From IMG/VR virus record IMGVR_UViG_3300021057_000274, positions 248,001-312,000 of that record: a DNA stretch of 64,000 nucleotides; one strand, written 5' to 3'. Below are positions 27,952 to 45,354 of this stretch, piece after piece (position 1 is the first letter of the stretch; every line of letters begins with the position of its first letter). The notes beneath the pieces are model-generated. The model made no database searches and was not told the origin of the DNA. It was given only the letters and a program-made list of their open reading frames with translations. Both the position numbers and the translations under genes were made by a program.

Positions 27952-28306
27952 GAAGCTGATGAAGATGTTCGAGAGCCAACTCTCCAGGGCCATGGCTTTT
28001 CAAGAGAGTCAAATCCCGACGGTCTCAGACTTGACCGCAGAGCAACTCGAGATCTCAAAGAAGGTATACGGTGACGACTTGAGCGACGAGACGCTACGAG
28101 CTCGCTACGAGTCATGGGTCGGGAAAAAGCAACTCTTTTTCATGGCCGAGACATTCGTTGATGGTTTACTCAAGATTCAGGTCTTGGAAGTGCATGACAC
28201 CGATATTCCTAGCATGGCGGACAAGTGGGTAATCTCTCCATACGCTAACGACGACGGAATGGACAAACACGCTATCACGCTACCGCGGCTGAGAGAGCGT
28301 GTCTAA
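27938..28306 (+). CDS. Hypothetical protein
   Basis: ORF in operon. Confidence 0.5.
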   Translation: MLTTEKLMKMFESQLSRAMAFQESQIPTVSDLTAEQLEISKKVYGDDLSDETLRARYESWVGKKQLFFMAETFVDGLLKIQVLEVHDTDIPSMADKWVISPYANDDGMDKHAITLPRLRERV

Positions 28307-29714
28307 GATCTGCACCATCCACGTCCACGACGAGGTCAACTGCCGCGTCGACGGGCTTCAACCCCAGGACCTCCAGGTCATCTGGGAGAAGTTCGGGATC
28401 TTCGTTGACGGCTACTTTCACATGCCTGCGTACCAGCTCAGGCGGTGGGACGGGAAGATCCGGTTCTTCGACAAGAACGGCAAGACCTACACCAAGCTTC
28501 TTGACGAGATCGTTCCCTACCTTGACACGTGGGGCTACGAGGTCAAGCTAGAGGATCACCGCGTTCAAGCGCCGGTGATCACCGACAGGATCGGAGAGGA
28601 GTTCTTCAATCTCGACGACGGGTGGAAGCTCCGCCCCTACCAGGTCGAGGTCGTCAACGCGCTTCTCTCGGAGGGCTCAGGCTTCGCGGTCTGCGCGACC
28701 GGCGCTGGCAAGACGAGCATGTGCGCGGCGCTCGCGACCGTCCTCTACCTGAACGGTCTCCAGGTCCTCGTCATCGTGCCGTCATCCGACCTGGTCACTC
28801 AGACCGTCGATGACTTTCGTGACAAGCTCAGGATGTATCCGATCACGGTCGGCGAGTACTCCGGAAGCGACAAGGACATCGATCACCCGATCGTCGTCGG
28901 CACCTGGCAAGCGCTTCAAAATGTGCCGCACTACATGCAGTTCTTTCAAGCAGTTCTCGTTGACGAGGCGCACGGCGCGAAGGCGAACGTCATCAAGGAC
29001 TTGCTGAACAACCACGGAAAGCACATCTCTCACAGATATGGCTTCACCGGAACGTTTCCGAAGCCCAAGGCTGACCAGTATAACCTCAAGGCGTCGATCG
29101 GCCAGATCATTCGTGAGGTCACCGCGCGCTGGCTGATCGACCACGGCTACCTAGCGGAAATCGAGATCATCCCTGTCGAGACGGTCGACGAGGATCCTGA
29201 CCTACCCGACTACGCCTCAGAGCAGGCCTACCTCGCGAAGCACGGCGAGCGGACCGCCGCGATCGCGGCGTTCATCGCTGAGAAGCGCGCTGAGCTAGGC
29301 AACACTCTCGTGCTGATCAACCAACAGAAGCTCCAGCAGGGACGCGAGATGGCGGAGATGATCGACGGCGCGGTCTACATGGCGGGCGAGACGAAGAAGG
29401 ACTTTCGGCGCGAGTACTACGACCGCTTTGACACCAACGACCACGAGTGCGGGGTGCTGTCGGCGGGGATCGCGGCGGTTGGGATCGACATCCCACGGAT
29501 CTTCTGCGGTGCTCTGGTCGACGCACCGAAGTCGTTCGTCAAGTGCATCCAGGGCGTCGGGCGGACGCTCCGCAAGGCGGATGACAAGAACAGAGTCGTC
29601 GTCTTCGACGTCTACTCGAAGTTGAAGTACAGCAAGAAGCACTGGAGAGAGCGCAAGAAGTACTACGCTGAGGCGGAGTATCCGGTCAGCGACACCATCA
29701 AGCTGAGGTATTGA
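28299..29714 (+). CDS. uvsW: SF2 DNA helicase UvsW
   Basis: WDGKIRFF, LRPYQ, ATGAGKT, VDEAH, GFTGT, GIDIP, QGVGRTLR. Confidence 0.93.
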   Translation: MSKICTIHVHDEVNCRVDGLQPQDLQVIWEKFGIFVDGYFHMPAYQLRRWDGKIRFFDKNGKTYTKLLDEIVPYLDTWGYEVKLEDHRVQAPVITDRIGEEFFNLDDGWKLRPYQVEVVNALLSEGSGFAVCATGAGKTSMCAALATVLYLNGLQVLVIVPSSDLVTQTVDDFRDKLRMYPITVGEYSGSDKDIDHPIVVGTWQALQNVPHYMQFFQAVLVDEAHGAKANVIKDLLNNHGKHISHRYGFTGTFPKPKADQYNLKASIGQIIREVTARWLIDHGYLAEIEIIPVETVDEDPDLPDYASEQAYLAKHGERTAAIAAFIAEKRAELGNTLVLINQQKLQQGREMAEMIDGAVYMAGETKKDFRREYYDRFDTNDHECGVLSAGIAAVGIDIPRIFCGALVDAPKSFVKCIQGVGRTLRKADDKNRVVVFDVYSKLKYSKKHWRERKKYYAEAEYPVSDTIKLRY

Positions 29715-31995: not shown

Positions 31996-32193
31996 ATGAA
32001 AAAATACGAACAGCTCCAAACCCCCCGAGAGAAAGCGGCGCACCTCGAGGATCTCATGACTACTCTCTACAGCGGCCTGCGCGGCTGCTGTGGGCAGCTC
32101 CACGCGTACTCAGATAACCGCGAGCTCATCAAGCGCCTGCTCCAGGGAGAGCTAGAGCGCCAACAAGCCATCGCAAAGTGCAGAAGTACCTAG
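31996..32193 (+). CDS. Hypothetical protein
   Basis: ORF in operon. Confidence 0.45.
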   Translation: MKKYEQLQTPREKAAHLEDLMTTLYSGLRGCCGQLHAYSDNRELIKRLLQGELERQQAIAKCRST

Positions 32194-32717
32194 GACCAGA
32201 ACGCCGTGAAGGCACCTACGTAAGCGCAAAGTATAAGCAGAAGTCAGCGATCGATCTAATGGCCTGGGCAACTCTCTGCGGCATCCCCGAGCCGCTCCCG
32301 TTCGCGAAGTATCACACCACGATCCTCTACAGCCGAGTTCAGCTCCCCGCCGCTCACGGCCTCATCTATGACTCACGGAAGAGCGATGAGGTTTGGGAGT
32401 GTATGCCGATCGAGCTCAAGCTCTTCGAGTCACGCGGCCGTCTCGGCGAGGTCGGAAAAGCAGCGCTCTGCCTCGTTCTCAGCGCTCCTCAGATCGAGAA
32501 CATCCACGTGCAACTCCGCGCTGCAGGCGGCACCCACGACTTCGATGACTATGTTCCTCACCTCACCCTCACCTATAAGTGCCCACCCGACTTCGACCTC
32601 ACGAGCCTGCCACTCCCGACCGAGGCTCTCCTGGTAGATCAAGTCAAGGCTGAGCCGCTTGATCTAGAGTGGGCTGAAAAGAAGAAGGTAAAGACCGATG
32701 AGAAGCAAGCCAACTAA
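32178..32717 (+). CDS. acb1: Anti-CBASS nuclease Acb1 (2H phosphoesterase, T4 57B-like)
   Basis: GTYVSAKY, HTTILYSRV, GGTHDFDDYVPHLTLTY, EPLDLEW closely parallel T4 57B (HSTICYSRV, GATHDFDDYTPHITLSY, EPLKLDW). Confidence 0.85.
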   Translation: MQKYLGPERREGTYVSAKYKQKSAIDLMAWATLCGIPEPLPFAKYHTTILYSRVQLPAAHGLIYDSRKSDEVWECMPIELKLFESRGRLGEVGKAALCLVLSAPQIENIHVQLRAAGGTHDFDDYVPHLTLTYKCPPDFDLTSLPLPTEALLVDQVKAEPLDLEWAEKKKVKTDEKQAN

Positions 32718-32961
32718 CTCAAACTACCGCGACAACTATGACGCGATCTTCGGCAAGAAGAAGCCAGAGGTGACCTATGAGCTCTGGCAAGATCATCCCG
32801 GGAGCAACTCCTTCACGTTCATCAGCGAGACGAACGAGTCGTCTAGACGCTCCCTCGCGCCAGACGCGATCCTCCTAACGAAGATCACGTCGTCGTCGTT
32901 CTACCGCGCGAATCAGCTCAAGAACTCCTTCCTCAAGGAGTACACGAAGGAGCACAAGTGA
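32698..32961 (+). CDS. Hypothetical protein
   Basis: Coupled ORF. Confidence 0.5.
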   Translation: MRSKPTNSNYRDNYDAIFGKKKPEVTYELWQDHPGSNSFTFISETNESSRRSLAPDAILLTKITSSSFYRANQLKNSFLKEYTKEHK

Positions 32962-34103
32962 AGGCCGCGATCGACCTGATCTGCCGCAAGCTCGCGTCGA
33001 GCGAGTACTCTCACCAGGTGAGCTGGGCTCACCTCAGGGCCAACCAGCTCCGCAACATCGCGAGAGAGAACCCCGGCTGCGGGATCCCTGAGACGATCGA
33101 GGTCCAGGACTTTGACGGCCCTCGCCACTCCCGCGACTGGTCAGAGTACGACGTCGTCTACATCTACCACGGGATGGACTACAAGCCAGGCCCGTACATC
33201 AACGTCTTCGACGGTTTGGTCGAGCACGCCGCCAAGTTCTTCGAGCGCCTGATCTGGCCGCAGCATCGCCACATCAAGTTCGTCTCGCTCGACATCGAGA
33301 TGCCACCCTACGGTCGTCTCTGTCGAGACAAGAAGGGTACCCGCTCTGCCTACTGGGCGAACGTCGACTGGAACGCGGTGCAAGCCAAGTGCGAAGCGAT
33401 CACCGAGGTCGTCCGCGACCCATGCAAGCACTTCGCGCCGGGCAAGTACCGACATCTCGTGATCGGCGACTCTCACGCGCACTCGGCCTACAAGGCTACC
33501 TCGATGGTTCTCCGCAAGGACGAGCGTACTCTCGCTGGCGTGCTGCGCAAGGGCATCGAGAACGAGATCAAGGAGTACGGCGGTTGGGACATGAGCGAGA
33601 TCGACTCGCTCACTTGTTACTGGGGAAACATCGACATCCGTCACCACCTCTGCCGCACCGCTGATCCGCTTCAGGCGACTCGCGACCTGCTCAAGACCTA
33701 TGAGGACGCGTTGCTCAAGTTGAATCGTCCGATCGAGCTCGTGACGATGCTACCGATCGAGGATGAGTCGCGCCCCCTCCCAAAGTCGGGCTATTACGGT
33801 GATCGCTCTGACAACAAAACGCCCTTCTTTGGCTCTCGCGCTGAGCGCATCAAGGTCATGACCGCCTTCAATGATCTCCTTCGCGAGATGGCTGCGAGAA
33901 ACTCAGGCTGGACGATCTACGAGTGGCCCAAGCTCTGGTACGAAATGGACGGCGTCGAGTTCATGGACACGATCATGGAGCGCCCACGCTCGGTGCATCT
34001 AGCGAGAAAGTACTATCGTTGGGACCTCCTCAACAACGTACCCAACCCGAACCACGCGCCCGCCGCTGTGCCTGTCCCAAAGAAGAGCCTCCTCGAGTTC
34101 TGA
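32958..34103 (+). CDS. SGNH/GDSL-fold protein, putative DNA-modification enzyme
   Basis: VIGDSHAH block I, GNIDIRHH block III, SVHL block V; ends KKSLLEF. Confidence 0.65.
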   Translation: MKAAIDLICRKLASSEYSHQVSWAHLRANQLRNIARENPGCGIPETIEVQDFDGPRHSRDWSEYDVVYIYHGMDYKPGPYINVFDGLVEHAAKFFERLIWPQHRHIKFVSLDIEMPPYGRLCRDKKGTRSAYWANVDWNAVQAKCEAITEVVRDPCKHFAPGKYRHLVIGDSHAHSAYKATSMVLRKDERTLAGVLRKGIENEIKEYGGWDMSEIDSLTCYWGNIDIRHHLCRTADPLQATRDLLKTYEDALLKLNRPIELVTMLPIEDESRPLPKSGYYGDRSDNKTPFFGSRAERIKVMTAFNDLLREMAARNSGWTIYEWPKLWYEMDGVEFMDTIMERPRSVHLARKYYRWDLLNNVPNPNHAPAAVPVPKKSLLEF

Positions 34104-34716: not shown

Positions 34717-35859
34717 ATGTCTAAGAAAATTCGTGTCGCCGTAGCAGGCATCGGAAATTGCTTTTCCTCTCTCTATCAGGGTCTCGAGTTCTACAAGGAC
34801 ACCGACCCGGACAGCGGGATCATTCCGGGCGTGATGCACATGCGCATCGGTGGCTATCATCCGGCCGATATCCAGATCGTTGCGGCATTCGACGTCGATC
34901 GACGCAAGGTCGGTCGCCCCGTCGGCGAGGCGATCTTCGCTGCACCGAACTGCGCTCGCGTGTTCTGTCAGGATGTTCCGGACGGACCGATTGTGCAGAT
35001 GGGTCCGGTCATGGATGGGGTGTCGGATTACATGCAAGAGCAGCCAGAGAAGATCGGCTTTCGCGTCTCGAACGAGGAGCCGGTCAACATCGTTCAGGTT
35101 CTTCAAGATACGAAGGCAGACATTCTGATCAACTACCTCCCGGTCGGCTCCGAGACCGCCTCTAAGCATTACGCTCAGTGCGCGATCGCTGCTGGGGTCG
35201 CTTTCATGAATTGCATCCCGGTCTTCATCGCCTCTGATCCGGAGTGGGAGAAACGGTTCATCGAGGCTGGGCTTCCGATCATCGGCGATGACATGCGCAG
35301 CCAGTTCGGGGCGTCGATCATGTCGCAGATCCTCCAAGAGACCGCCTTCGATCGCGGCTGTGACGTGCTCTACCACCAGCAGATCAACATCGGGGGCAAC
35401 ACGGACTTCAACAACATGATGGTGCAAAGTCGGCTGAAGTCAAAGAAGATCTCGAAGGAGAACGTGATTCGCGCTCAGAACGACCTGCGCGGAATCCCGG
35501 TTGACCCCGACGCGCTCTTCGCCGGGCCCTCGACGTTCATCCCGTACCTCAAGGACAACAAGGTCGCGTACATCAATCACCGTCTGCTCGGGTTCGGCGG
35601 CGCTCCGATCGACATCGACGTCAAGCTCTCGGTGCAAGACTCCGAGAACTCGGCGGGGGTGGTGATCGACGCGGTGCGCTACCTCAAGGTCGCGAGAGAA
35701 GAGGGGATCGTCGGCGCTCTGCGCGGACCGTCGGCCTTCACCCAGAAGACCCCTCCACAGCAGATGCGCCTCAACGACGCGAAGGAGGAGTGTGACGCGT
35801 TCGCGAGGCGCGACCTGGCGGCGCTCAAGGCGGTCAACAAGTTCAAGAGCAAGATCTAA
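34717..35859 (+). CDS. ino1: myo-inositol-1-phosphate (inositol-3-phosphate) synthase, bacterial/archaeal type
   Basis: VAVAGIGNCFSSLYQG, VAAFDVD, NYLPVGSE, GDDMRSQFGA, NIGGNTDF, SKKISK, DSENSAG, KTPP. Confidence 0.93.
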   Translation: MSKKIRVAVAGIGNCFSSLYQGLEFYKDTDPDSGIIPGVMHMRIGGYHPADIQIVAAFDVDRRKVGRPVGEAIFAAPNCARVFCQDVPDGPIVQMGPVMDGVSDYMQEQPEKIGFRVSNEEPVNIVQVLQDTKADILINYLPVGSETASKHYAQCAIAAGVAFMNCIPVFIASDPEWEKRFIEAGLPIIGDDMRSQFGASIMSQILQETAFDRGCDVLYHQQINIGGNTDFNNMMVQSRLKSKKISKENVIRAQNDLRGIPVDPDALFAGPSTFIPYLKDNKVAYINHRLLGFGGAPIDIDVKLSVQDSENSAGVVIDAVRYLKVAREEGIVGALRGPSAFTQKTPPQQMRLNDAKEECDAFARRDLAALKAVNKFKSKI

Positions 35860-35870
35860 CCAAGGAATCA

Positions 35871-37097
35871 ATGAGCACCAACTCGATCTACAACTTCAAC
35901 GTCGGAGTACACAGCGCAGAGGAAGCGGCAGGCATGTCGATCCTGGCGATGCAGGAGCGCTTTCGCAAGCTCGGCGTCTCGTTCTTCAGCTGGGAGAAGG
36001 AGATGGTCGTTAACATGCCGAAGAAGCTCTTTCTCGACGAGGTGCTCAGGATCATCGAGGAGCTAGACGAGAGCATCAGCTACACCAACGTGATGGTGCT
36101 CTCGCCTGGCATCGTCGAGATAACGCTCTCGAAGCAACGGCCAGAGAGCATGCTCGAGACCCAGGACGAGCTTCGAGTCTACATCAAGCTCAACAGCTGG
36201 GAGTACTACGACGAGTACGGTGAGGAGACTCAGTTCCCCTTCGTCACCCAAAAGGACGAGATGGTCTGCGTCGCGAACATCGAGGTGATGGGACAGAGCT
36301 GGCTCGCCGAGATCTTCATCCCGAAGCTGCTCGAGTGCGTCAATCAGCACCGCCAGTCCGACAAGATCTCGCTCATCAAGTGGCTCTACTCGTCTCAGCA
36401 TGGCACCGCGAGCAAGGTCTTTCAGATTCGCAAGGACTGGGAGATCAACCCCGTCTACTACCCGTGGCTCAAGCAGCATCTCAGCGAGCTAAACATCGCT
36501 GGGGAGGAGAGCCTTCGTCCCTACTACCACGCCTTCCTCAAGAGCCAGTCACAGATCCTCGTGCTCTTCGGTGAACCTGGCACCGGCAAGACGTCGTTCA
36601 TCCGTGACATGATCTGCGAGATGGGACTCAACGCGCTCATCTCGTACGACCTCAAGGTGCTGACGTCGGATCACACGTTCATCGAGTACCTGACGAGCGA
36701 CATCTTCGACCTGATCGTGGTCGAGGACGCTGACGACCTGCTCACCTCCTCCCGGAGCGAGAACAACAAGGTCATCTCGAAGATCCTCAACGTCTCGGAC
36801 GGCATCATCAAGCTCCCCAAGAAAAAGATGATCTTCACGACGAACTTGCGCGACGTCAGCGAGATCGACAACGCGGTCTACCGTCTCGGTCGCTGCTTCG
36901 ACGTCGTTAACTTCAGAAAGCTCGACCACGTTGAGGCTCAGAGCGTCGCTGACGCGCTTGACATCAAGCTTCCAGAGAAGAAGGGCGACAGCTACGCATT
37001 GTCAGACCTCTTCTTCTTGAAGAACCTCGGGAACAGCGATGATCCGTTCGTCAAGCGCAACGAGGAGCGTCTCAAGAAGAAGCTAGGCTTCGTTTGA
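35871..37097 (+). CDS. AAA+ ATPase
   Basis: GEPGTGKTS, LIVVEDAD, ILNVSDG, IFTTN, RLGRCFD. Confidence 0.85.
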   Translation: MSTNSIYNFNVGVHSAEEAAGMSILAMQERFRKLGVSFFSWEKEMVVNMPKKLFLDEVLRIIEELDESISYTNVMVLSPGIVEITLSKQRPESMLETQDELRVYIKLNSWEYYDEYGEETQFPFVTQKDEMVCVANIEVMGQSWLAEIFIPKLLECVNQHRQSDKISLIKWLYSSQHGTASKVFQIRKDWEINPVYYPWLKQHLSELNIAGEESLRPYYHAFLKSQSQILVLFGEPGTGKTSFIRDMICEMGLNALISYDLKVLTSDHTFIEYLTSDIFDLIVVEDADDLLTSSRSENNKVISKILNVSDGIIKLPKKKMIFTTNLRDVSEIDNAVYRLGRCFDVVNFRKLDHVEAQSVADALDIKLPEKKGDSYALSDLFFLKNLGNSDDPFVKRNEERLKKKLGFV

Positions 37098-37693
37098 CGA
37101 TTCACAATCTCTTTCCGATCCCAATCGGCTCTTACAAGATCGGAAGAGAGCTGACGCTTGATGAGCTAAAGTATCTCGACGGCTTACTAAGACGACCGAA
37201 CGTCGGAAACGCTACCAGTTGCAGCTCAACGATCCTTGAGAGCCAGGAGCTGAGCGAGCTTACAAGGTTCATCCTCGGATCACTTAAGAGCTACTTCATC
37301 CAGGTCTACGACCCGCTCCACGACGTTAAGCTCAAGATCACCCAGAGCTGGTGCAACTACACGAAGCCCGGTCAGCATCACCACAAGCACAACCACGGCA
37401 ACAGCTTCATCTCAGGCGTGTTCTACGTCAAGGCCGACAAGATGATCGATAAGCTTTACTTTTATCAGGACGCGTATCAGCAACTCCAAATTCAGCCCAA
37501 AGTTTGGAATCTCTGGAACGCGCGCTCGTGGTGGCTAGAGGTAGGAGCTGGTGACTTACTCCTCTTCCCCTCTGCCTTGACCCACGAAGTAGCCGCGGTT
37601 GAGGGCACCGAAGAGCGAATCAGCATCTCCTTCAACACCTTCCCCATCGGAATCCTCGGGGACGAGAGAGATCTAACGCTGGTAAAAGTTTAG
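37094..37693 (+). CDS. 2OG-Fe(II) oxygenase (TIGR02466-like)
   Basis: SWCN...HHKHNHGNSFISGVFYV...GDLLLFPSALTHEV...RISISFN. Confidence 0.85.
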   Translation: MTIHNLFPIPIGSYKIGRELTLDELKYLDGLLRRPNVGNATSCSSTILESQELSELTRFILGSLKSYFIQVYDPLHDVKLKITQSWCNYTKPGQHHHKHNHGNSFISGVFYVKADKMIDKLYFYQDAYQQLQIQPKVWNLWNARSWWLEVGAGDLLLFPSALTHEVAAVEGTEERISISFNTFPIGILGDERDLTLVKV

Positions 37694-38470
37694 CAGAGCT
37701 TGAAAGAGCTTAGGTCTGTCGCACGCGTACATCCCAGCGCAGTTTAGGCAATTGTATTCAATCACCTTGAAGCTGCCGTCGGTCATCCGCACGAAGTCGA
37801 CAACGTAGTTTCGAGCTGGCGCGTAGTGAAGCTTGACGACGTTGAAGAACGACGTGACGTCTCGCACCTCGCTAGGCGTCAAGCGCTCGTAAGTGATCTT
37901 CGCTCCGATCTTGTAGACCGAAGAGGTGATAAGCTTGCCGTCAACGACGAAGTTGCGGTACTCCCTCTCCATCCCGTCGACGAGAGTTGCGCACAGCACT
38001 TGCTCGTCGTTCGGATGGTCGGAGAACGATGAGTCTTGGATCGACTTGCCAAAGATCGCGGCGTAGGGAGTTTGACCCTCCTCAACGATCGTGCCGGCGA
38101 ACGCTTTCAAGTCCCGCGTCGGCTTGATGAAGACGGGAGCAGTGACTGGCACGTCGCGAATCGTGCCGAAGCGCGCGAAGAAGGCGTGCGAGTTGAGGAG
38201 CAACTTTCCGAGGGCCTTGTGGTAGAAGGCCTGATCAAACGCGAGCGGGTCATAGTTCACGACGGCGCTGTGCGGAAGCACGCCGCGCTCCCGCATCTTC
38301 AGCATCTTCGTCGATCCGAGCATGATGACTCGGTCGTACTCGTAAAACTTCTCGAGCTCGACGATCTCGTCACTGAATGGGATTAACCCGAACCAGATCG
38401 GATCATGAACTCCGATCGACTGGAGCGCGAGCTGGTTCTCCATCAGCTCTTGCTCGCGCATGTGACTCAA
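37673..38470 (-). CDS. ATP-grasp protein (DUF4343/R2K-like)
   Basis: FIKPTRDLKAFAG, EYRNFVVDGKLITSSVY, YVVDF, VIEYN...AGMY. Confidence 0.8.
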   Translation of the reverse strand: MSHMREQELMENQLALQSIGVHDPIWFGLIPFSDEIVELEKFYEYDRVIMLGSTKMLKMRERGVLPHSAVVNYDPLAFDQAFYHKALGKLLLNSHAFFARFGTIRDVPVTAPVFIKPTRDLKAFAGTIVEEGQTPYAAIFGKSIQDSSFSDHPNDEQVLCATLVDGMEREYRNFVVDGKLITSSVYKIGAKITYERLTPSEVRDVTSFFNVVKLHYAPARNYVVDFVRMTDGSFKVIEYNCLNCAGMYACDRPKLFQALLNFYQR

Positions 38471-38489
38471 CTGAACTCCGAAGGTGATC

Positions 38490-38582
38490 TTAGGGATGTG
38501 ATTTTCTCCAGGGACACCAAACGGATGGCCATTGCGGATGACTAAAGATCGAGCGCTTGCAGTGCTTGCACACGGGGATCAT
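38490..38582 (-). CDS. Small Cys-rich peptide (30 aa, not in supplied ORF track)
   Basis: MIPVCKHCKRSIFSHPQWPSVWCPWRKSHP; ATG 5 nt after minus-strand TACAAT. Confidence 0.4.
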   Translation of the reverse strand: MIPVCKHCKRSIFSHPQWPSVWCPWRKSHP

Positions 38583-38587
38583 GAGAA

Positions 38588-38640
38588 ATTGTAACATCTC
38601 CGTCAACTATTGTACATCGCGTCAAGATCTATGTTAGAAT
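38588..38640. promoter_or_regulatory. Back-to-back sigma70-like promoters sharing palindromic TGTACA
   Basis: TGTACA at 38611-38616; TAGAAT at 38635-38640 (+) and TACAAT at 38588-38593 (-). Confidence 0.55.
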
Positions 38641-38646
38641 TTGACG

Positions 38647-39090
38647 ATGGTAGAGTTGAGAGATCTCGAGCTGAAAGATACAGCGGAGCTTTACGCGCTG
38701 ATCGAGATCTCGCGCAAGGATCTTCTCAATCTCTGGTGGGCGGAGTCAGCGACGTTCGAGTCGACAGCCCAGTTCATCGAGAACGCTAGACGGAGCTCGA
38801 ATCACGTCAAGGCGATCGTCGTTGACGGTCAGATCGCCGGCTGCATCTCTCTCATCGACATGCCAGACGGGAGCTTTCAGCTCGGGTACTGGTTAGGGAC
38901 TCCGCATCGCGGAAAGAGACACATTCAGCACGCGGTCGAGAAGATCAAGACCTTAGCAGAAGCGTACAGGCGTCAGATCATCGTGCGCATCAAGTCCAAG
39001 AACGTGAAGAGCCTGAGCGTCGTCAAGGGCGCAGGCTTCACGCATGTTGGCAACGACGGAGAGTGGACCTGGCACGTTTGGCGGCCGTAA
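38647..39090 (+). CDS. GNAT acetyltransferase (RimJ/RimL type)
   Basis: IAGCISL...LGYWLGTPHRGK...NVKSLSVVKGAGF. Confidence 0.85.
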   Translation: MVELRDLELKDTAELYALIEISRKDLLNLWWAESATFESTAQFIENARRSSNHVKAIVVDGQIAGCISLIDMPDGSFQLGYWLGTPHRGKRHIQHAVEKIKTLAEAYRRQIIVRIKSKNVKSLSVVKGAGFTHVGNDGEWTWHVWRP

Positions 39091-40232
39091 ACATTCTTCC
39101 CGACTTCAAGCAAGATCTGGATCGTAGCCTCATCCCGCAGATCCAGCGCTTCTGGACCAAGATCAACGAGCGTCAGCTCCACTTCATGGGAGTGCCAGGC
39201 TTTGAGACCTACGACACCGACGGAGATGAAGCTCTCGGGCGAGACGTCGAGTTCTTCCACTTCAGCATCTGCGCTGATGCCCGCATGCGCTACCTCGGAG
39301 AGAACTTCGTTCTCAACGATGATCAGCTCCTTGACCCCGTCAACAAGCTCTCTAACGCGGTCGTCGCGCACCTGTACGGCGGCCGTCGGATTTACTCGCT
39401 CTTCACGGGCGTCACTGACCCTCGCAAGGCGTACCTGGACTTTTCGCGAGTGGGAAGTGACCCTGACTACGTCAGGATGGTGCGTAGCAACGCTGAATAC
39501 GCGAAGCTACACGGTTTCAAGTTCTACGGCACAACGGAGCTACACACGTCTCTCCAGACTGCTGCGCGAAATTTCTGCCGAGACAAGTATGGTGATCCTG
39601 GCCGACCCGCAAGCAATGTCGACATTATCGAGTGGATCGCCTCCTGGCGCGACAAGGGGTTATTTGAAGCGCTTCTCGGGGCGACATCACTGGGAGAGAC
39701 CTTTGAGCACATCAAGTCCCTACCAGGAGTTGGCGCATACTACGGATACCACCTCGCCGTAGATTGCTCGCTCTTCCCGTTCACGAGATACCACCATGAC
39801 GAGCCGTTTTGCGTGCCCGGCGGCGGTTGCCAAACGACGTTGAAGATGCTCTTCCCGAGGCTCACCGCGTCGAAGAAGTTTCCCTTCGGCGAGGCGGTGG
39901 TCTGGATCGAGCAGAACCAGAAGGACCTGTTTCCGACGCTCCAGTTCCATCCGGCCCTTTGGAACATCGAGCGAGACGGGAAGAAGGTCTTTCCCTTCGA
40001 GCAGAACAAGCTGATGGTCTACGGTCTCGAGGTCGGGCTTTGCCAATTCGGAGTTTATTGCCACCTCAAGAAGAATCCTCACCTGATCGAGCGCCGCAAG
40101 GTCGGCGTCGATCCTGACCTGACGCCCCTCATCCTGCGAGAGCAGGGCGCGCCAGTTACCCCCGAGGAGCTGCGTGAGCTTCAGAGCGAAGCCGCGGCCC
40201 CGACGGCCACGAAGGGTCTCCTGGAGTTCTGA
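39063..40232 (+). CDS. aGPT-Pplase / amino-acid:DNA-transferase-like base hypermodification enzyme (HhH helical fold)
   Basis: IKSLPGVGAYYGYHLAVD HhH, VPGGGC loop, LEVGLCQFGVY; ends KGLLEF. Confidence 0.7.
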   Translation: MDLARLAAVNILPDFKQDLDRSLIPQIQRFWTKINERQLHFMGVPGFETYDTDGDEALGRDVEFFHFSICADARMRYLGENFVLNDDQLLDPVNKLSNAVVAHLYGGRRIYSLFTGVTDPRKAYLDFSRVGSDPDYVRMVRSNAEYAKLHGFKFYGTTELHTSLQTAARNFCRDKYGDPGRPASNVDIIEWIASWRDKGLFEALLGATSLGETFEHIKSLPGVGAYYGYHLAVDCSLFPFTRYHHDEPFCVPGGGCQTTLKMLFPRLTASKKFPFGEAVVWIEQNQKDLFPTLQFHPALWNIERDGKKVFPFEQNKLMVYGLEVGLCQFGVYCHLKKNPHLIERRKVGVDPDLTPLILREQGAPVTPEELRELQSEAAAPTATKGLLEF

Positions 40233-40432
40233 TGGGTCACTACTCTGAGCAGTACGAAGCTTCCGCTCGCGAGGAAGCGAAGCGCGAGAAGAAGCGTGCT
40301 CGACAGCAGCTGACGGCGATGGCGGAATTTCGCGACCAGCTGATCGGCAACATCGGTGCCGACGGCATCTCGCCGCGGCACCTGGACGCTTTTCAAGACA
40401 TGATGAACGAGACGAAGCTGCGCGCGAGATGA
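40232..40432 (+). CDS. Hypothetical protein
   Basis: TGATG coupled ORF. Confidence 0.5.
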   Translation: MGHYSEQYEASAREEAKREKKRARQQLTAMAEFRDQLIGNIGADGISPRHLDAFQDMMNETKLRAR

Positions 40433-40665
40433 AGCACAGCGAGCTTTTTTTAGACGTGTACATCAAGCCCGTCCAACCAGTCGAGTACTTTACCGTCTCG
40501 GTAGATGTCGGTGACGGCGAGGTGATCGTGCGAGATCTCACGATCTTGAAGAGCCGTAACGCAGATCTAACGCCAGAGCAGGAGAAGCTCTGGGAGATCT
40601 TCGCCTCCGCTGGATTCGTAGCCAGTCGCAAATTTTCAATTAACAAAGACCTCAAGATAGGATAA
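40429..40665 (+). CDS. Hypothetical protein
   Basis: Coupled ORF. Confidence 0.45.
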   Translation: MKHSELFLDVYIKPVQPVEYFTVSVDVGDGEVIVRDLTILKSRNADLTPEQEKLWEIFASAGFVASRKFSINKDLKIG

Positions 40666-40677
40666 AATCTAACAAAT

Positions 40678-41400
40678 ATGCTCACTGGCTCTTACTATAA
40701 GAAGGGCGAGGGGTTCGTGGATGTACCCCTTAAGCAACACAAGACCGGGCTCTACTTCCGTCCTGGCTCCCACGATCGCGCGGCGATCGTCGACTGTACC
40801 GGCGGGCGCGACTACGTCACCGTCAACTGCGCTGGGCACCGCGTCCTCGACCTGGGCGGCAACATCGGCGCGTTCATCTTCAAGGCCGCTAGGGAGGGAG
40901 CAGAGCGAGTACTCTCGTTCGAGCCCGAGCCCAGCAACTTCAAGGTGCTCCAGGCCAACCTCGAGCACGCGATCAAGCCGCTCAACAGCTCGACGATCGT
41001 CGAGGCTCGCCAGCAGGCGGTCGCCGACAAGCATGACAAGCTCGAGCTGATCGTCGGCGGCAGCTACAGCACGGGCACCCCGTCGCTGACCGCCAAGAAG
41101 GGCAAGGACAAGGTCGGCATCCTCGTTGACGTCGTGCCGTTCAAGGAGGTCTGCGAGGAGTTCAAGCCGACGCTCCTCAAGATGGACATTGAGGGCGCCG
41201 AGTACTCGTTCATCTTCGACGGCCTTCCGGAGTCGATCCGCGAGTTCGTCTTCGAGATCCACGGTCAGAACGCTCGCGAGAACGAGCTGATGCACAAGTG
41301 CTGGGAGATGTACACGAGGGACTGGGACGTCGTCTCACGCTTCGATCGCAAGTTCTTCGGTAAGACCCACCTGATCATCGCTCACCTCAAGCGGAAGTGA
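40678..41400 (+). CDS. FkbM-family SAM-dependent methyltransferase
   Basis: VLDLGGNIGAF, VLSFEPEPSNF, LLKMDIEGAEY. Confidence 0.88.
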   Translation: MLTGSYYKKGEGFVDVPLKQHKTGLYFRPGSHDRAAIVDCTGGRDYVTVNCAGHRVLDLGGNIGAFIFKAAREGAERVLSFEPEPSNFKVLQANLEHAIKPLNSSTIVEARQQAVADKHDKLELIVGGSYSTGTPSLTAKKGKDKVGILVDVVPFKEVCEEFKPTLLKMDIEGAEYSFIFDGLPESIREFVFEIHGQNARENELMHKCWEMYTRDWDVVSRFDRKFFGKTHLIIAHLKRK

Positions 41401-41633
41401 CCACGACGCCGATCCTCCCGACCGCGGGGGAGGAGATGACTGGGAATGAGCTGATCGCTCAGCTGCGTGAGCATCAGCTCACGCACAAGATCTGGGCAGA
41501 GTGGTTCGAAGCGCATCCGGAAGATCCTCGACAACACACCGAGGGAATCGGCGACGCGGTCTTCCATCGGCAGATCGAGGCGAAGTACTCAGAGATGATC
41601 CGCTGTGTGCAACGATTGATGAGTGAAGCCTGA
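41397..41633 (+). CDS. Hypothetical protein
   Basis: Coupled ORF. Confidence 0.5.
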   Translation: MTTTPILPTAGEEMTGNELIAQLREHQLTHKIWAEWFEAHPEDPRQHTEGIGDAVFHRQIEAKYSEMIRCVQRLMSEA

Positions 41634-42925
41634 TGCGCGTCGTGATCATCGGACAGCAGCTGAACCGCAACCACGCGGATCGGTTAAAGGGCGGCATTCA
41701 GACCTGTGAGCGCCTCCACGTCAAGCTGCTCAACGAGCTCGGGCACGAGATCCACTTCATCGCGGCCGCCGACACCGAACCCTTCACTCCCCACGCCAAG
41801 CTTCACCTCCTGGAGCTGCCGTCCGAAGAGACGCTCGGCGAGCTCTCGAGAGCTGACAAGGCTAAGGTCAGCCGCCAGAAGACCGTTGAGATCCGTGACA
41901 CGATCAGCGAGATTCGTCCTGACTTCATCATCAACCACAGCTACTCGAGCTCGCACGTCCGACTGCTCGCTGATCACGTCGAGCAGGGAATTCCGGGAAT
42001 CTTCTTCAACCACCAAAATCCAGTCGTCGCGAGCGACATCAGTCTGATCGCCAAGCTCGAGCAGTACATTCGCATGACTAAGCTTGGAGGAGCGCTTGTC
42101 TGCGTCTCTCCGTTCTCCCGTGACCTCTGGCGGAGGGCGATCCGCAAGCGCCTCAAGTCAGCGTCGTTCGCCTTCGTCGAGGAGGAGATGATCGACCAGG
42201 TTTATAACATGGTCTGCCCGCCAGCGTATATCGACCAGGTTAAGGTGTGGCGCTCTGATCCGAGCAACATCTTCGTGATCATCAGTCGCCCGACCAGGGA
42301 GAAGAACGTCGCTGGCTTTCTTGAGGTCTACGAGAGATCGCGTCTTAAGAATCCGGTGGTCATCTTTCTCGCTGTCGGCGGTGACCTCGAGAGCAACGAG
42401 TACTGGTTAGCCGAGCTGAAACCGATCATCGAGAGGCTCAAGGAGCAAGGTGTTCCGATCAAGGTGCGATCGAACGCTCCGCGCGCTGACGTCCTCTCTG
42501 CGCTTGAGACGGCCGCCTTCAACGTCATCCCGTGGGTCGACGAGTCGGCCTCGATCGTCGCGCTTGAGGGGGCTCAGTACGGCACGATCCCGCTCATGAT
42601 GTCGAAGACGCGTGAGGACGGATCACTGACCGGTCACGCGGCCCAATCACTCATCCAGCTCAACTCCCCCTACCTCGAGATGCTCCCAGCAGGTCGCAAG
42701 CATCAAGAGCGCGCGGCAGCCAGGCTTCGCGACACGGTTCAAAGCTACGAGATGAGTTCGCCCGACGAGCAGTACAAGATCAGAAACTATTTGCGAGATC
42801 GTACTCTACGAAAGCACTCGCTTACGTGCCGAGTTAATGATCTTGCTGACATCATGGCTGAGGTGAGATTTCGCGTGAGCTCGCATGCGACGATTCCAGC
42901 CATCGTACGTTTATTGGAGATGTGA
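41633..42925 (+). CDS. GT-B fold glycosyltransferase (GT4-like)
   Basis: MRVVII...GGIQ...LGHEIHF, VCVSPF, ISRPTREKN, ESASIVALEGAQYGTIP; ends IVRLLEM. Confidence 0.8.
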   Translation: MRVVIIGQQLNRNHADRLKGGIQTCERLHVKLLNELGHEIHFIAAADTEPFTPHAKLHLLELPSEETLGELSRADKAKVSRQKTVEIRDTISEIRPDFIINHSYSSSHVRLLADHVEQGIPGIFFNHQNPVVASDISLIAKLEQYIRMTKLGGALVCVSPFSRDLWRRAIRKRLKSASFAFVEEEMIDQVYNMVCPPAYIDQVKVWRSDPSNIFVIISRPTREKNVAGFLEVYERSRLKNPVVIFLAVGGDLESNEYWLAELKPIIERLKEQGVPIKVRSNAPRADVLSALETAAFNVIPWVDESASIVALEGAQYGTIPLMMSKTREDGSLTGHAAQSLIQLNSPYLEMLPAGRKHQERAAARLRDTVQSYEMSSPDEQYKIRNYLRDRTLRKHSLTCRVNDLADIMAEVRFRVSSHATIPAIVRLLEM

Positions 42926-43095
42926 TGACTTTTGATTACGGCCTCATGGCGCAAACGGTGAAAGCTTTCTCAGACGTGATGGAGCAGATCCAGAAATCTG
43001 AGCAGTGTTCTACCGCGATTCGGGTCGGTGCGCTCCAAGCTCAAGCTGGTCTTACTCCGCTGATGAGGGCGATCCTGGAAGAGTATAAGAAGTGA
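42925..43095 (+). CDS. Small hypothetical protein (56 aa, not in supplied track)
   Basis: MTFDYGLMAQ...ILEEYKK fills the gap with coupled start and stop. Confidence 0.5.
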   Translation: MTFDYGLMAQTVKAFSDVMEQIQKSEQCSTAIRVGALQAQAGLTPLMRAILEEYKK

Positions 43096-43475
43096 ACTCG
43101 TTCGACATCGACGGTGTTATCTACATCAGCGCTGAGTTAGGCGGAATCTTTCCAGGACCGCATGACGTGATCATCACCGGGCGCAGCTTCGAGGAGGCTC
43201 CTGAGACGATCGCGATGCTCACTAAGCGTGGCATCTCGAACTACGTCTACTTCAACCCGCTCCCGTTCGCTCAAAAGACTCGGGTATCGTCTGGAGAGCA
43301 CAAGGCCCGCATCTTAAATAATCTAAGAGAACAAGGCATCAAGGTCGGCATTCACTTCGAGGATGACCCGATCCAGGCTCAAGTGATCGCTGATCAAGCC
43401 CCACACGTCGCGATCGTTCTCCTCCAGCATGACCTGACAGAGAGGGAAAATGTCCGTCACCCGATGCCAGACTGA
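43092..43475 (+). CDS. Capless HAD-superfamily phosphatase
   Basis: SFDIDGVI motif I, ITGRS motif II, HKARIL, HFEDDP motif IV. Confidence 0.8.
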   Translation: MNSFDIDGVIYISAELGGIFPGPHDVIITGRSFEEAPETIAMLTKRGISNYVYFNPLPFAQKTRVSSGEHKARILNNLREQGIKVGIHFEDDPIQAQVIADQAPHVAIVLLQHDLTERENVRHPMPD

Positions 43476-43513: not shown

Positions 43514-44149
43514 ATGATCCCAGATCTTCCCGAAAATGGCATTCTCATGCCTAAGATGGTCAACCGGTTTCGTGTCACTTTTCATCGATGTCACAACCTC
43601 AAGCGCGTCGCTGAGGGGCTCAGCCTTCAGGTTCTCGACGTCTCCCTGCCGTCCGTTGATCGGCTCCTCTCCACCTCGCGGAGTCGAGGTAAGAAGGTCT
43701 ACGGGCTCGAGACCGAGGAGGGGGCTCTAACCCTCACGTTTGAGGATGACCTCCAGTCTCGCGCGATCACGGCGATTTATGACGAGCTGATCGTTGATGA
43801 GGGAAACAGCTTCACCGTTCGCGTCGACTTCTTTAACGGCAACGGAGACGTGACCGAGACGTATGAGTTTAGAGGATCAGTCGGACCGATCACCGGCCCG
43901 ATCTTTGATTATTCTGGCGGTGACTCAGGAAATCGCTCCGCCTCGATCAGGTTTCCGAGCTATGTGAACACGACAACCGACGCGCTCAGCAAAGAAACGC
44001 TCGCTCTCATGAAGTTGATCTCGACCGCTGAGCTTAATTACGGTTGGGGTGAGAAGAGGCCGGGGGTAGTGCGCCGTAGCTTGAGCATCAACGTCGGGAA
44101 CGCCTTCACTCACTCCATCGTCACCAAGCGTCCGACGGAGGCGAAATGA
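43514..44149 (+). CDS. Tail-tube (gp19) paralog with C-terminal extension
   Basis: ILMPKMVNRFRVTF, LSLQV, LTLTFEDD, VTETYEF align with ILHPRQKNRWRVIF, LSLQL, CTLTVEDD, VTETWKY of 9943..10539. Confidence 0.7.
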   Translation: MIPDLPENGILMPKMVNRFRVTFHRCHNLKRVAEGLSLQVLDVSLPSVDRLLSTSRSRGKKVYGLETEEGALTLTFEDDLQSRAITAIYDELIVDEGNSFTVRVDFFNGNGDVTETYEFRGSVGPITGPIFDYSGGDSGNRSASIRFPSYVNTTTDALSKETLALMKLISTAELNYGWGEKRPGVVRRSLSINVGNAFTHSIVTKRPTEAK

Positions 44150-45354
44150 GCTTGAAGTGGGGAACGATCGTTCCGCTCATCGGCGGGCTCACCTTGGCTG
44201 GAAAGCGAGCGACCGGCCAGGACCCAAACTTCCTCCTGACATATACGCCGTTCGGAGAGAACGAGAAGAACGTGCGCGCCTACTTCCCGAACGTTCCCTA
44301 TCACCAGCTCGACACCGAGGACCGCGGCGGCTTCGACGTCGCGGCGAACAGAGACGTTGACTTCGTTCAGGCCCTCTGTCCCTGCGCCGGACTCTCGCTG
44401 CTGAGCTCAGGCTCCCCCGAGCAGCGCGCTAAGCAAAACTACTGGATGCTCGAGACCGCCAAGTTCATGACGGGCGAGCTTCGTCCGCGGGTCTTCTGGG
44501 GCGAGAACGCTCCGGGTCTCTATAGCAACACCGGCGAGCACGTGCGTAACGAGCTCCGCCAGATCGGGGAGAGGAACGGCTACTCGTTCTCCGTCTACGC
44601 GACGTCAACTCACTTCCACGGAATTCCTCAGACCCGCAAGCGCACGTTCTACTTCTTCTGGCGTGACGGTGAGGCGCCGGTGATGGAGTACTACCGAAAG
44701 CCTGTCAAGAACTTCACCGAGTACATGCGTGAGGTGCCGAAGGACTCGATTCACCACACCGCCGACGACATCCAGGCGGCGCGTGACACTCTCAACACCA
44801 ACCCGTTCATCATGTTCCTCCAGGAGAAGCATGACGGCAAGGGCATCGAGAAGATGCGCGAGTGGCTGGTGCGAAAGGACATGAAGAGCTTCACCCTCAA
44901 CACTTACCTGTTGCTCAGCGAGCAGTTCGAGGAGTGCATGGACTGGCTGAAGCAGCGCGGCCACGACAAGCACCTTCGTCTCGCTCAAAAGGTCTGGGAG
45001 AAGGTGACCTCGAAGGGCGGCTTCTGGGACGGCAGCTTCCCGATGTATCGCGGCGACCTGATGTTCGCGACCCTCATCTCTCGGACGCTCTACGCGATTC
45101 ACCCTGAGGAGGAGCGCGTTCTGACGACACGCGAGATGATGCATCTGATGGGGATGCCGCATGACCTGCCGTTGGTGACGGGCGGCTTGAATCACATCTG
45201 CCAGAACGTGCCGGTGTCGACGGGCGCTGACATGACTAACGAGGTGATCGCTTACCTGAGGGGCGAGCGGGAGAGCAGCGGGGCGCGGTTCACGATGCAG
45301 AGCAACATCACCCAGCGCATTGACCACAGCGAGTCGGCGCTGCTAAGCTTTTAG
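44146..45354 (+). CDS. C5 DNA cytosine methyltransferase-like protein
   Basis: CPCAGLS (motif IV), GENAPG (VI), IPQTRKRTF (VIII), LTTREMMHLMGMP (IX), CQNVPV (X); ends ALLSF. Confidence 0.85.
   Translation: MSLKWGTIVPLIGGLTLAGKRATGQDPNFLLTYTPFGENEKNVRAYFPNVPYHQLDTEDRGGFDVAANRDVDFVQALCPCAGLSLLSSGSPEQRAKQNYWMLETAKFMTGELRPRVFWGENAPGLYSNTGEHVRNELRQIGERNGYSFSVYATSTHFHGIPQTRKRTFYFFWRDGEAPVMEYYRKPVKNFTEYMREVPKDSIHHTADDIQAARDTLNTNPFIMFLQEKHDGKGIEKMREWLVRKDMKSFTLNTYLLLSEQFEECMDWLKQRGHDKHLRLAQKVWEKVTSKGGFWDGSFPMYRGDLMFATLISRTLYAIHPEEERVLTTREMMHLMGMPHDLPLVTGGLNHICQNVPVSTGADMTNEVIAYLRGERESSGARFTMQSNITQRIDHSESALLSF

Follow-up and report, generated by a model that had tools for sequence, protein, structure and literature searches.

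The gene at positions 39063-40232 (+) of the window, a 64,000-nucleotide stretch (positions 248,001 to 312,000) of the IMG/VR virus record IMGVR_UViG_3300021057_000274, encodes a real, distant relative of the phage enzymes that decorate hydroxymethyl-uracil in DNA. Intriguingly, this gene, which we call PPL (Pplase-like), sits in a widely conserved cassette with an inositol-phosphate synthase, in phages inferred from a residue signature to make hydroxymethyl-cytosine, so it probably builds a DNA base modification not yet described. Most likely PPL is a clamp-tethered, kinase-independent 5hmC-DNA group transferase with a cyclitol donor, although acceptor, donor and product are all inferred from gene context, without biochemical support, and we put the probability of this reading at about 0.5.

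In order to establish whether the gene is genuine, we first examined the ORF and its relatives. The frame is open and 389 aa long, although the start may be TTG 39078 rather than GTG 39063, because homologues begin MAxxNxIP at that point. It contains the HhH hairpin LPGVGAYYGYHLAVD (residues 220-234; 39720-39764, +), the loop VPGGGC (residues 251-256) and the motif LEVGLCQFGVY (residues 322-332). A word search found 264 protein clusters at E<=0.001, and a further 147 IMG/VR contigs encode a relative. In a 32-sequence alignment 53 columns are invariant, including H230, D246, E247, E323, V324, C327 and Q328. Within the hairpin, G222, G224 and Y226-H230 are invariant; in the following segment (39798-39830, +), D246, E247, C250, P252, G253 and G255 are invariant and H245 nearly so. 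In contrast, a megablast search of window positions 37000-43000 against 50,697 phage records gave no match, no NCBIfam family matched PPL, and a PDB sequence search with the family profile gave only chance hits. The relatives and the invariant columns show that PPL is not a chance ORF.

We next asked to which family PPL belongs. Its only Pfam match is PF18723 (HMUDK_hel), the former aGPT-Pplase clade 1, at 48.2 bits against a cut-off of 25 (E 1.3e-12), and 119 homologues with a precomputed Pfam domain all carry PF18723. However, the match covers only the C-terminal half, with residues 184-335 aligned to profile positions 140-274 of 281, while Pseudomonas phage M6 gp55, a clade-1 member, matches the model over its full length (positions 3-280). 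A pairwise BLASTP comparison with M6 gp55 was not significant, and profile-profile comparison with M6 gp55 homologues aligned the same half only and was weak (E 0.011). The AlphaFold model of PPL (pLDDT 89.7) is closest to the solved clade-2 transferase PaMx11 gp46 (PDB 8z2n; Z 11.1, rmsd 3.8, 231 aligned residues, model 24-357 against chain 7-277), followed by a queuine-salvage hydrolase; PaMx11 gp46 was also the top Foldseek hit with probability 0.95. Ordinary HhH glycosylases scored lower, at Z 6-7. This shared fold, together with the acidic pair D246-E247 after the hairpin, could suggest a DNA glycosylase or lyase used for repair or for attacking host DNA, but such a role appears very unlikely given the best fold match, the invariant Cys motif of the Pplase clades and the embedding of the gene in a base-modification cassette.

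The predicted catalytic motif E323-V-G-L-C327-Q-F-G-V-Y (40029-40058, +) aligns with EHTLCEFDKY of M6 gp55, and its Glu-x3-Cys spacing is that of ETVLC (E243 and C247) in M6 gp51, a clade-2 (PF18724) protein that reads ETVLCKWKSH. The equivalent Cys and Glu are essential in M6 gp51, ViI gp247 and 15599 Pplase2 (PMC8989533, PMC13458397). The sequence-only reading had compared the motif with a signature E-x-x-LCE-x-x-KY and inferred an altered active site. The signature exists, and the E-to-Q and K-to-V differences from clade 1 are real; the changes, however, affect residues flanking the catalytic pair and not the pair itself, and the L, F and Y are also kept. We note that V324 replaces the Thr that helps bind the metal in clade 2 (PMC13458397), so the chemistry may differ, and that the clade-1 paralogue M6 gp55 was dispensable in vitro (PMC8989533), so members of this family may not be transferases at all.

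In known thymidine pathways such an enzyme works with a 5-hmdU DNA kinase (PF18748). No such kinase was found in the window, in the whole 389,331-bp genome at E<=1, or in five other genomes that carry the family. To investigate the likely acceptor, we then examined the thymidylate-synthase homologues. Those of the six genomes and 37 distinct ones beside the cassette all read E60/D145/C148/RSND171/D179 like T4 gp42 (dCMP hydroxymethylase), with Asp, not Asn, at the base-specifying position, apart from three truncated sequences. The retained D171 excludes a 5-hydroxy-dCMP synthase by the criterion of PMC13326640, and we rejected this identity because the linked homologue keeps Asp at the D169 position. 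It remains possible in principle that PPL is an ordinary thymidine-hypermodification enzyme acting on 5-phosphomethyl-dU, whose kinase and dUMP hydroxymethylase are too divergent to recognize; PPL belongs to PF18723, a dCMP deaminase gene often lies beside the cassette, and unassigned P-loop and other ORFs exist in the genome. Given the above findings and the additional presence of a canonical ThyA, we consider this highly unlikely.

In 28 fully flanked metagenomic loci it is accompanied by an inositol-phosphate synthase (MIPS) in 28, a small HAD phosphatase in 28, a two-domain SGNH-like protein in 26, a dCMP hydroxymethylase in 19 and a C5-methyltransferase-like (C5MT-like) protein in 14. In the window, MIPS (34717-35859, +; 380 aa) matches PF01658 and M. 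tuberculosis Ino1 (1gr0) over its full length (E 4.5e-100). The HAD-type phosphatase (43092-43475, +; 127 aa) was identified by phrog_415 and a weak PF00702 hit, and its DxDGV, TGR and EDD motifs are conserved in 66 sequences. In 58 loci it lies immediately upstream of the PPL gene, in most of them overlapping or within a few bases of its first possible start. The gene order is PolB...gene42-dCMP deaminase-MIPS-HAD-PPL-SGNH-C5MT-uvsX-gp41, and the cassette often lies between gene 42 and uvsX, where T4 has beta-glucosyltransferase (beta-gt).

Two inserts are specific to the window. Between MIPS and PPL (35871-39090) lie an AAA ATPase (35871-37097, +), a 2OG-Fe(II) oxygenase (37094-37693, +), an R2K ATP-grasp protein (37673-38470, -) and a GNAT protein (38641-39090, +), identified by Pfam and PHROG hits; these are absent from the 82 related loci, except that AAA occurs in one. 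Between PPL and HAD (40678-42925, +) lie an FkbM-type methyltransferase (40678-41400) and a GT4 glycosyltransferase (41633-42925), identified by Pfam and NCBIfam hits, which occur in 7 of 82 and 2 of 82 loci, respectively. The genes between MIPS and PPL are possible extra tailoring genes, not core.

The constant presence of MIPS agrees with the suggestion of the sequence-only reading that inositol may serve as nucleophile; its other suggestions, an aGPT-Pplase-like protein, no kinase partner and a cytosine derivative as acceptor, also held up as far as computation can go. However, the link between the MIPS-HAD pair and PPL is not exclusive. The pair also occurs without PPL in Stenotrophomonas phage Moby, inside a 7-deazaguanine cluster between FolE and QueC/DpdA/QueE, and in Caulobacter phage Cr30, and may be a portable donor-synthesis unit used by more than one kind of DNA modification. 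Moreover, Aeromonas phages carry a fusion of the SGNH-like protein and PPL without MIPS or HAD nearby, next to a sodium:solute symporter. Hence PPL might modify 5hmC with a group other than a cyclitol, drawn from another host metabolite or a product of the SGNH-like protein, with MIPS and HAD serving a general metabolic or separate modification role. We regard this as the less likely alternative, since MIPS and HAD are next to PPL in 28 of 28 fully flanked loci and the symporter fits import of the same kind of solute equally well.

The SGNH-like protein (32958-34103, +; AF2 pLDDT 90.8) combines an unknown N-domain (about 1-155) with a predicted SGNH/GDSL-fold domain (about 160-365), for which GDSL esterases score Z 11-12; G170-D-S-H173, D226, H230 and H347 are invariant. 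It is 34% identical (E 9e-54) to residues 1-334 of Aeromonas phage 31 ORF233c, whose C-terminal half is PPL-like (24% identical, E 3e-16). The complex prediction for PPL with the SGNH-like protein gave no answer (score 0.00), which counts neither for nor against binding. The C5-cytosine DNA methyltransferase-like protein (44146-45354, +; 402 aa) matches PF00145 and has conserved PC, ENA and QxRxR motifs. We considered CmoX-type carboxymethylation (PMC12783734) for this gene, but its motif is LCPCAG, not SPPC, and none of the genes annotated near the cassette is CmoA-like, although CmoA was not specifically searched for. The C5MT-like protein keeps all the covalent-catalysis motifs, and a C5-methyltransferase fold could itself be the enzyme that activates 5hmC. 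We considered that PPL may be only a DNA-binding, base-flipping accessory module that presents the hydroxymethyl base to the SGNH-like or C5MT-like enzyme, as implied by the current Pfam name of PF18723, "5-hmdU DNA kinase, helical domain"; the dispensability of M6 gp55 in vitro and the Aeromonas fusion also speak for it. This seems doubtful, because the invariance of E323 and C327 together with H230, D246, E247 and C250 looks like an active site, and because the nearest solved fold is a proven transferase that uses the same Glu-x3-Cys.

Intriguingly, three cassette proteins end in the same tail motif as the phage DNA polymerase. PPL ends in KGLLEF (40212-40229, +), the SGNH-like protein in SLLEF and the C5MT-like protein in ALLSF. 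In this genome the same tail type occurs only on PolB, a FEN-like exonuclease, three cassette proteins and one small ORF. Across loci it was present in 66%, 70% and 94% of the three cassette families (94% for the C5MT-like family) and in 60% of PolB, against 0-5% in 13 other families, and it resembles the T4 gp43 tail SLDFLFG. The tail is a probable sliding-clamp-binding peptide, and PPL, the SGNH-like protein and the C5MT-like protein probably ride on the sliding clamp behind the replication fork, which suggests that phage base-modifying enzymes are recruited by the clamp.

Taken together, these findings led us to propose that PPL is a divergent member of the Pplase (HhH, Cys-dependent) superfamily of DNA-base group transferases, outside any thymidine pathway, in a cassette that hypermodifies 5hmC in newly replicated phage DNA. 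In this proposal, the gp42-type dCMP hydroxymethylase and a nucleotide kinase would supply 5hm-dCTP, so that the DNA carries 5hmC; MIPS would convert glucose-6-phosphate to inositol phosphate, on which the HAD phosphatase would act. By analogy with clade-2 enzymes, PPL would flip out 5hmC through its HhH hairpin and Cys327 would attack C6 with the assistance of Glu323; the 5-CH2OH oxygen would leave to give an exocyclic methylene, to which a cyclitol oxygen would add, yielding a 5-(cyclitol-oxymethyl)cytosine. A kinase may not be needed, since the 5hmC hydroxyl can probably be displaced without phosphorylation, as appears to occur with bisulfite and in C5-methyltransferase-catalysed thiol substitution. 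Alternatively, the SGNH-like partner activates the hydroxyl in place of a kinase; on this view it works with PPL, the two being fused in Aeromonas phages. More tentatively, a previously undescribed natural base, 5-(cyclitol/inosityl-oxymethyl)cytosine, may be made after replication by PPL and its SGNH-like partner with neither a nucleotide-sugar donor nor a DNA kinase, the donor being made by the phage itself or, in Aeromonas phages 31 and 44RR, imported through the symporter, in a system widespread in uncultured T4-like phages that replaces glucosylation. The known Pplase enzymes act only on phosphorylated 5hmU; a kinase-free branch acting on 5hmC with a cyclitol donor would extend this chemistry to cytosine, adding a new class of DNA hypermodification and a possible tool for labelling 5hmC.

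Among known systems, M6 gp55 of clade 1, whose own function is unknown, shares with PPL the hairpin, which aligns with VGWGPFMAYEVVTD of M6 gp55, the loop, which aligns with the clade-1 GPGA loop, and the E-x-x-L-C-x-F-x-x-Y motif. In contrast, the N-terminal 180 residues of PPL are unrelated at sequence level, its partners are MIPS, HAD, SGNH-like and C5MT-like proteins rather than a P-loop 5-hmdU DNA kinase, and the linked hydroxymethylase is cytosine-specific by signature rather than uracil-specific. Pplase2, the amino-acid:DNA transferase (PF18724) of PaMx11 gp46, M6 gp51, YuA and SH-Ab 15599, shares the fold and the Glu four residues before the catalytic Cys, yet PPL has no match to its HMM at E<=10, and hhalign against M6 gp51 found nothing meaningful. 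PPL is also about 100 residues longer, with a clamp-type tail, and the residue after the Cys, a donor-specificity position in Pplase2 (K248 in YuA, G227 in 15599; PMC13458397), is an invariant Gln.

The cassette shares with T4 beta-gt its genomic slot and, by inference, its job of masking the 5hmC hydroxyl after replication, but the fold and chemistry are unrelated to those of T4 beta-gt and alpha-gt, namely GT-B with UDP-glucose against HhH/Cys with, as proposed, a phage-made cyclitol. Only a weak 48-column hhalign match links the N-domain of the SGNH-like protein with the beta-gt N-domain (E 2e-4), and no beta-gt appeared in the Foldseek PDB or BFVD lists or the VIA wide list, so we keep this as a weak lead only. 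Finally, the uncharacterized ORF233c of Aeromonas phage 31 and its 44RR2.8t homologues (phrog_17781) contain both the SGNH-like two-domain unit and the PPL-like half, in a single 795-aa fusion, with a symporter as neighbour instead of MIPS and HAD. These phages are gp42-positive and lack glucosyltransferases, and Petrov et al. 2010 (PMC2993671) asked how such gene-42-positive T4 relatives protect their 5hmC; for Aeromonas phages 31, 44RR and 25 our proposal offers a concrete answer that can be tested in cultured phages.

In order to establish whether the open reading frame at window positions 39063-40232 (+) represents a real gene, we first examined its translation and searched for relatives. 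The ORF is open and encodes 389 aa, and it contains LPGVGAYYGYHLAVD (residues 220-234), VPGGGC (251-256) and LEVGLCQFGVY (322-332). A word-based search of 5.8 billion proteins found 264 clusters at E<=0.001, and a scan of IMG/VR found 147 contigs encoding a relative. We then aligned 32 sequences and found 53 invariant columns, including G222, G224, Y226-H230, D246, E247, C250, P252, G253, G255, E323, V324, C327 and Q328. It is a real gene, hereafter called PPL (Pplase-like HhH protein). Its ORF overlaps, at 39063-39090, the end of a GNAT gene, whose stop lies at 39088-39090, and the start may be TTG 39078 rather than GTG 39063, because homologues start MAxxNxIP there.

To assign the protein to a family, profile searches were employed. 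The only Pfam match was PF18723 'HMUDK_hel' (48.2 bits, cut-off 25), with residues 184-335 aligning to profile positions 140-274 of 281. Pseudomonas phage M6 was used to anchor the names. Its gp55, the clade-1 aGPT-Pplase paralogue, matches PF18723 over its full length; gp51, of clade 2, matches PF18724 'ADDT'; and gp54 matches PF18748, the P-loop 5-hmdU DNA kinase. So PF18723 is the old clade 1. M6 gp55 reads EHTLCEFDKY, which is exactly the signature cited in the sequence-only reading, and M6 gp51 reads ETVLCKWKSH, while the window protein reads EVGLCQFGVY. The Glu, Leu, Cys, Phe and Tyr are kept, and Gln328 (invariant) and Val331 replace the Glu and Lys. In clade 2 the Cys and the nearby Glu are essential (PMC8989533). 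In phage SH-Ab 15599 Pplase2 the Glu (E222), the next Thr (T223) and an N-terminal Asp (D25) bind the metal, C226 is the catalytic residue, and the residue after the Cys helps select the donor (PMC13458397). In PPL, the Thr position is an invariant Val and the donor position an invariant Gln. The relationship to clade 1 is remote, however. BLASTP with M6 gp55 was not significant, and profile-profile comparison aligned only the HhH-GPG-ExxLC half (E 0.011-0.017). M6 gp55, the closest named relative, has no demonstrated activity (PMC8989533). Clade 2 was not detected by sequence.

We further predicted the fold with AlphaFold2, using the 32-sequence alignment as input, and obtained a confident model (mean pLDDT 89.7, pTM 0.86). 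The top PDB hit in a Foldseek search was 8z2n, PaMx11 gp46, the 5-PmdU glycinyltransferase (probability 0.95). In VIA-align comparisons PaMx11 gp46 scored Z 11.1, with 231 residues aligned at rmsd 3.8 and spanning model residues 24-357, followed by the queuine-salvage enzyme DUF2419 at Z 8.9, whereas ordinary HhH glycosylases (EndoIII, AlkA, Mag1, OGG1) reached only Z 6-7. An ordinary glycosylase, the alternative raised in the sequence-only reading, is thus not the best match.

We next asked whether a kinase partner is encoded in the genome. The window lies in a 389,331-bp virus record that CheckV rates 98% complete, and PF18748 found nothing in it at E<=1, nor in five other viral genomes of 98-360 kb that carry the family. 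All six genomes have a divergent thymidylate-synthase homologue. The copy of the window genome (225 aa) is 56% identical to T4 gp42 and lies, outside the window, near a thymidylate-kinase-like P-loop gene (phrog_761; both within genome C1:8902-10843, also L004:1339-3280), which is probably the dNMP kinase for the modified nucleotide. The window genome, at about C1:50155-51039, and the two complete genomes among the five also carry a canonical ThyA. We then checked the diagnostic residues in T4 numbering, namely E60, D145, C148, R168-S-N-D171 and D179. D179 corresponds to E. coli N177 and specifies cytosine, and D171 corresponds to E. coli D169, which is Asn in the recently described 5-hydroxy-dCMP synthases (PMC13326640). 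All 43 full-length sequences tested read EDCRSNDD, a set comprising T4 gp42 itself, the window genome's copy, the five other genomes' copies and the full-length copies among the 39 distinct ones found beside the cassette described below. The window genome's ThyA and the M6 dUMP hydroxymethylase have Asn at position 179. These phages are therefore predicted to make 5hm-dCMP.

To investigate the genomic context of PPL, we compared the window's genes with 82 related loci (80 from IMG/VR and 2 from ENA and JGI) by tblastn and by de novo clustering, with Pfam and PHROG labels. Among the 28 loci with a distinct PPL sequence and at least 4 kb on both sides of the gene, an inositol-phosphate synthase (MIPS) was present in 28/28, a small HAD phosphatase in 28/28, a two-domain SGNH-like protein in 26/28, a gp42-type hydroxymethylase in 19/28 and a C5-cytosine-methyltransferase-like (C5MT-like) gene in 14/28. 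In 58 loci the HAD gene lies immediately upstream of PPL, and in most of them its stop overlaps or lies within a few bases of PPL's first possible start. The commonest gene order is PolB - MazG - primase-like - Nmad1 - gene 42 - dCMP deaminase - MIPS - HAD - PPL - SGNH - (epimerase) - C5MT - uvsX - x - gp41, while in T4 the order is 43 - imm - 42 - beta-gt - ... - uvsX - 40. The cassette thus sits where T4 keeps its beta-glucosyltransferase. In the window the same core is present, with the SGNH-like protein at 32958-34103, MIPS at 34717-35859, PPL at 39063-40232, HAD at 43092-43475 and the C5MT-like protein at 44146-45354. The window MIPS is a full-length homologue of M. tuberculosis Ino1 (1gr0, E 4.5e-100), and the next hit is a five-membered-cyclitol-phosphate synthase (6k96). 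The C5MT-like protein keeps the PC, ENA and QxRxR motifs, but its Pfam alignment starts only at profile position 46, so the SAM-binding N-terminus is divergent. The core is interrupted by genes not found in most relatives: an AAA ATPase, a 2OG-Fe(II) oxygenase, an R2K ATP-grasp enzyme and a GNAT (35871-39090), then an FkbM methyltransferase and a GT4 glycosyltransferase (40678-42925). Together with MIPS and the phosphatase, these appear to be the enzyme classes of mycothiol biosynthesis (Ino1, MshA GT4, phosphatase, ligase, MshD GNAT), and they may elaborate the donor further. Just upstream of the cassette lies an Acb1 anti-CBASS homologue (32178-32717; PF23474, E 2e-25), and a UvsW-like helicase is located at 28299-29714.

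The SGNH-like partner, a 381-aa protein, has no Pfam hit, but its model is confident (pLDDT 90.8). Residues about 160-365 are an SGNH/GDSL fold (Z 11-12 with many esterases, and Z about 10 with OatA-type O-acetyltransferases), and G-D-S-H170-173, D226, H230 and H347 are invariant. The N-domain (residues 1-155; window 32958-33425) is unassigned. It gave a weak local profile match to the N-terminal domain of T4 beta-glucosyltransferase (residues 59-116 against 54-104, including LNxFGG against INFFGG; hhalign E 2e-4), which the Foldseek and VIA lists did not confirm. Intriguingly, the SGNH-like protein is 34% identical (E 9e-54) to residues 1-334 of Aeromonas phage 31 ORF233c, which is 795 aa long, and the C-terminal half of ORF233c is the only cultured-phage relative of PPL (24% identity, E 3e-16). 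The two proteins are therefore fused in Biquartavirus phages, which argues that they act together. Phage 31 has a gp42-type gene with D171 and D179, and phages 44RR, 31 and 25 were reported to have genes 42 and 56 but no glucosyltransferases (Petrov et al. 2010, PMC2993671). The gene just upstream of the fusion, ORF234c, encodes a sodium:solute symporter (PF00474; ORF234c and ORF233c together at L001:3100-7080 of the phage 31 locus). This could mean that the donor is imported rather than made, but that is speculation.

We then found a shared feature at the C-termini. PPL ends KGLLEF (40212-40229), the SGNH-like protein KKSLLEF (34083-34100) and the C5MT-like protein SALLSF (45334-45351). In the whole genome only six of 1,265 stop-to-stop ORFs of at least 100 aa end this way, namely the family-B DNA polymerase, ending RLLSFD, a FEN/RNase H-like 5'-3' exonuclease, ending GLLEF (polymerase and exonuclease at genome C1:135515-138271 and C1:141581-142633), the three cassette proteins and one small ORF. 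Across the related loci, the share of distinct complete C-termini carrying an L-x(1,2)-F tail (TLEEFFx) was 66% for PPL, 70% for the SGNH-like protein, 94% for the C5MT-like protein and 60% for PolB, in contrast to 0-5% in 13 other neighbour families, including MIPS and HAD, and 3.3% in background ORFs. T4 gp43 ends SLDFLFG, which is probably its gp45-clamp-binding tail (Berdis et al. 1996; Shamoo and Steitz 1999). The shared tail is probably a sliding-clamp-binding peptide on DNA-modifying enzymes, and we infer that the three proteins act on DNA at the clamp, while MIPS and HAD act on small molecules.

Taken together, these findings suggested a mechanism, which is inferred from sequence, predicted structure and gene context rather than from biochemical data. 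Hydroxymethylcytosine would enter DNA through the gp42 route, and MIPS and HAD would supply a cyclitol or its phosphate. PPL would then flip out the base, Cys327 would add to C6, and the 5-CH2-OH oxygen would leave with help from Glu323, after which the cyclitol oxygen would add to the exocyclic methylene. A kinase may be unnecessary because the 5hmC hydroxyl can probably be displaced directly, as appears to happen with bisulfite and in C5-methyltransferase-catalysed thiol substitution. Alternatively, the SGNH-like partner would supply the activation. However, the link between the MIPS-HAD pair and PPL is not exclusive, since the pair also occurs in cultured T4-like phages without PPL, SGNH-like or C5MT-like genes. 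In Stenotrophomonas phage Moby (L099:6201-11615) it sits inside a 7-deazaguanine DNA-modification cluster (FolE - MIPS - HAD - QueC - TGT/DpdA-like - QueE, between uvsX and gp41), which hints that a cyclitol may also decorate a deazaguanine base, and it is likewise found in Caulobacter phage Cr30 (L100:7001-9260). In the literature searched, we found no description of this cassette or of a cyclitol-modified DNA base, and the one paper that mentions a phage MIPS treats it as a bacterial-like gene of unknown role (PMC9025141).

In summary, our results confirm the gene and its motifs, and support, as far as sequence, structure and context can go, the proposal of the sequence-only reading that it encodes an aGPT-Pplase-like transferase without a 5hmU-DNA kinase partner and with a different donor or acceptor, for example a cytosine derivative or an inositol nucleophile. 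We assign the gene to the Pplase kind as a variant, not as a standard clade-1 member, as it differs from that clade in lacking a full-length match to PF18723, the clade-1 signature and the kinase partner.
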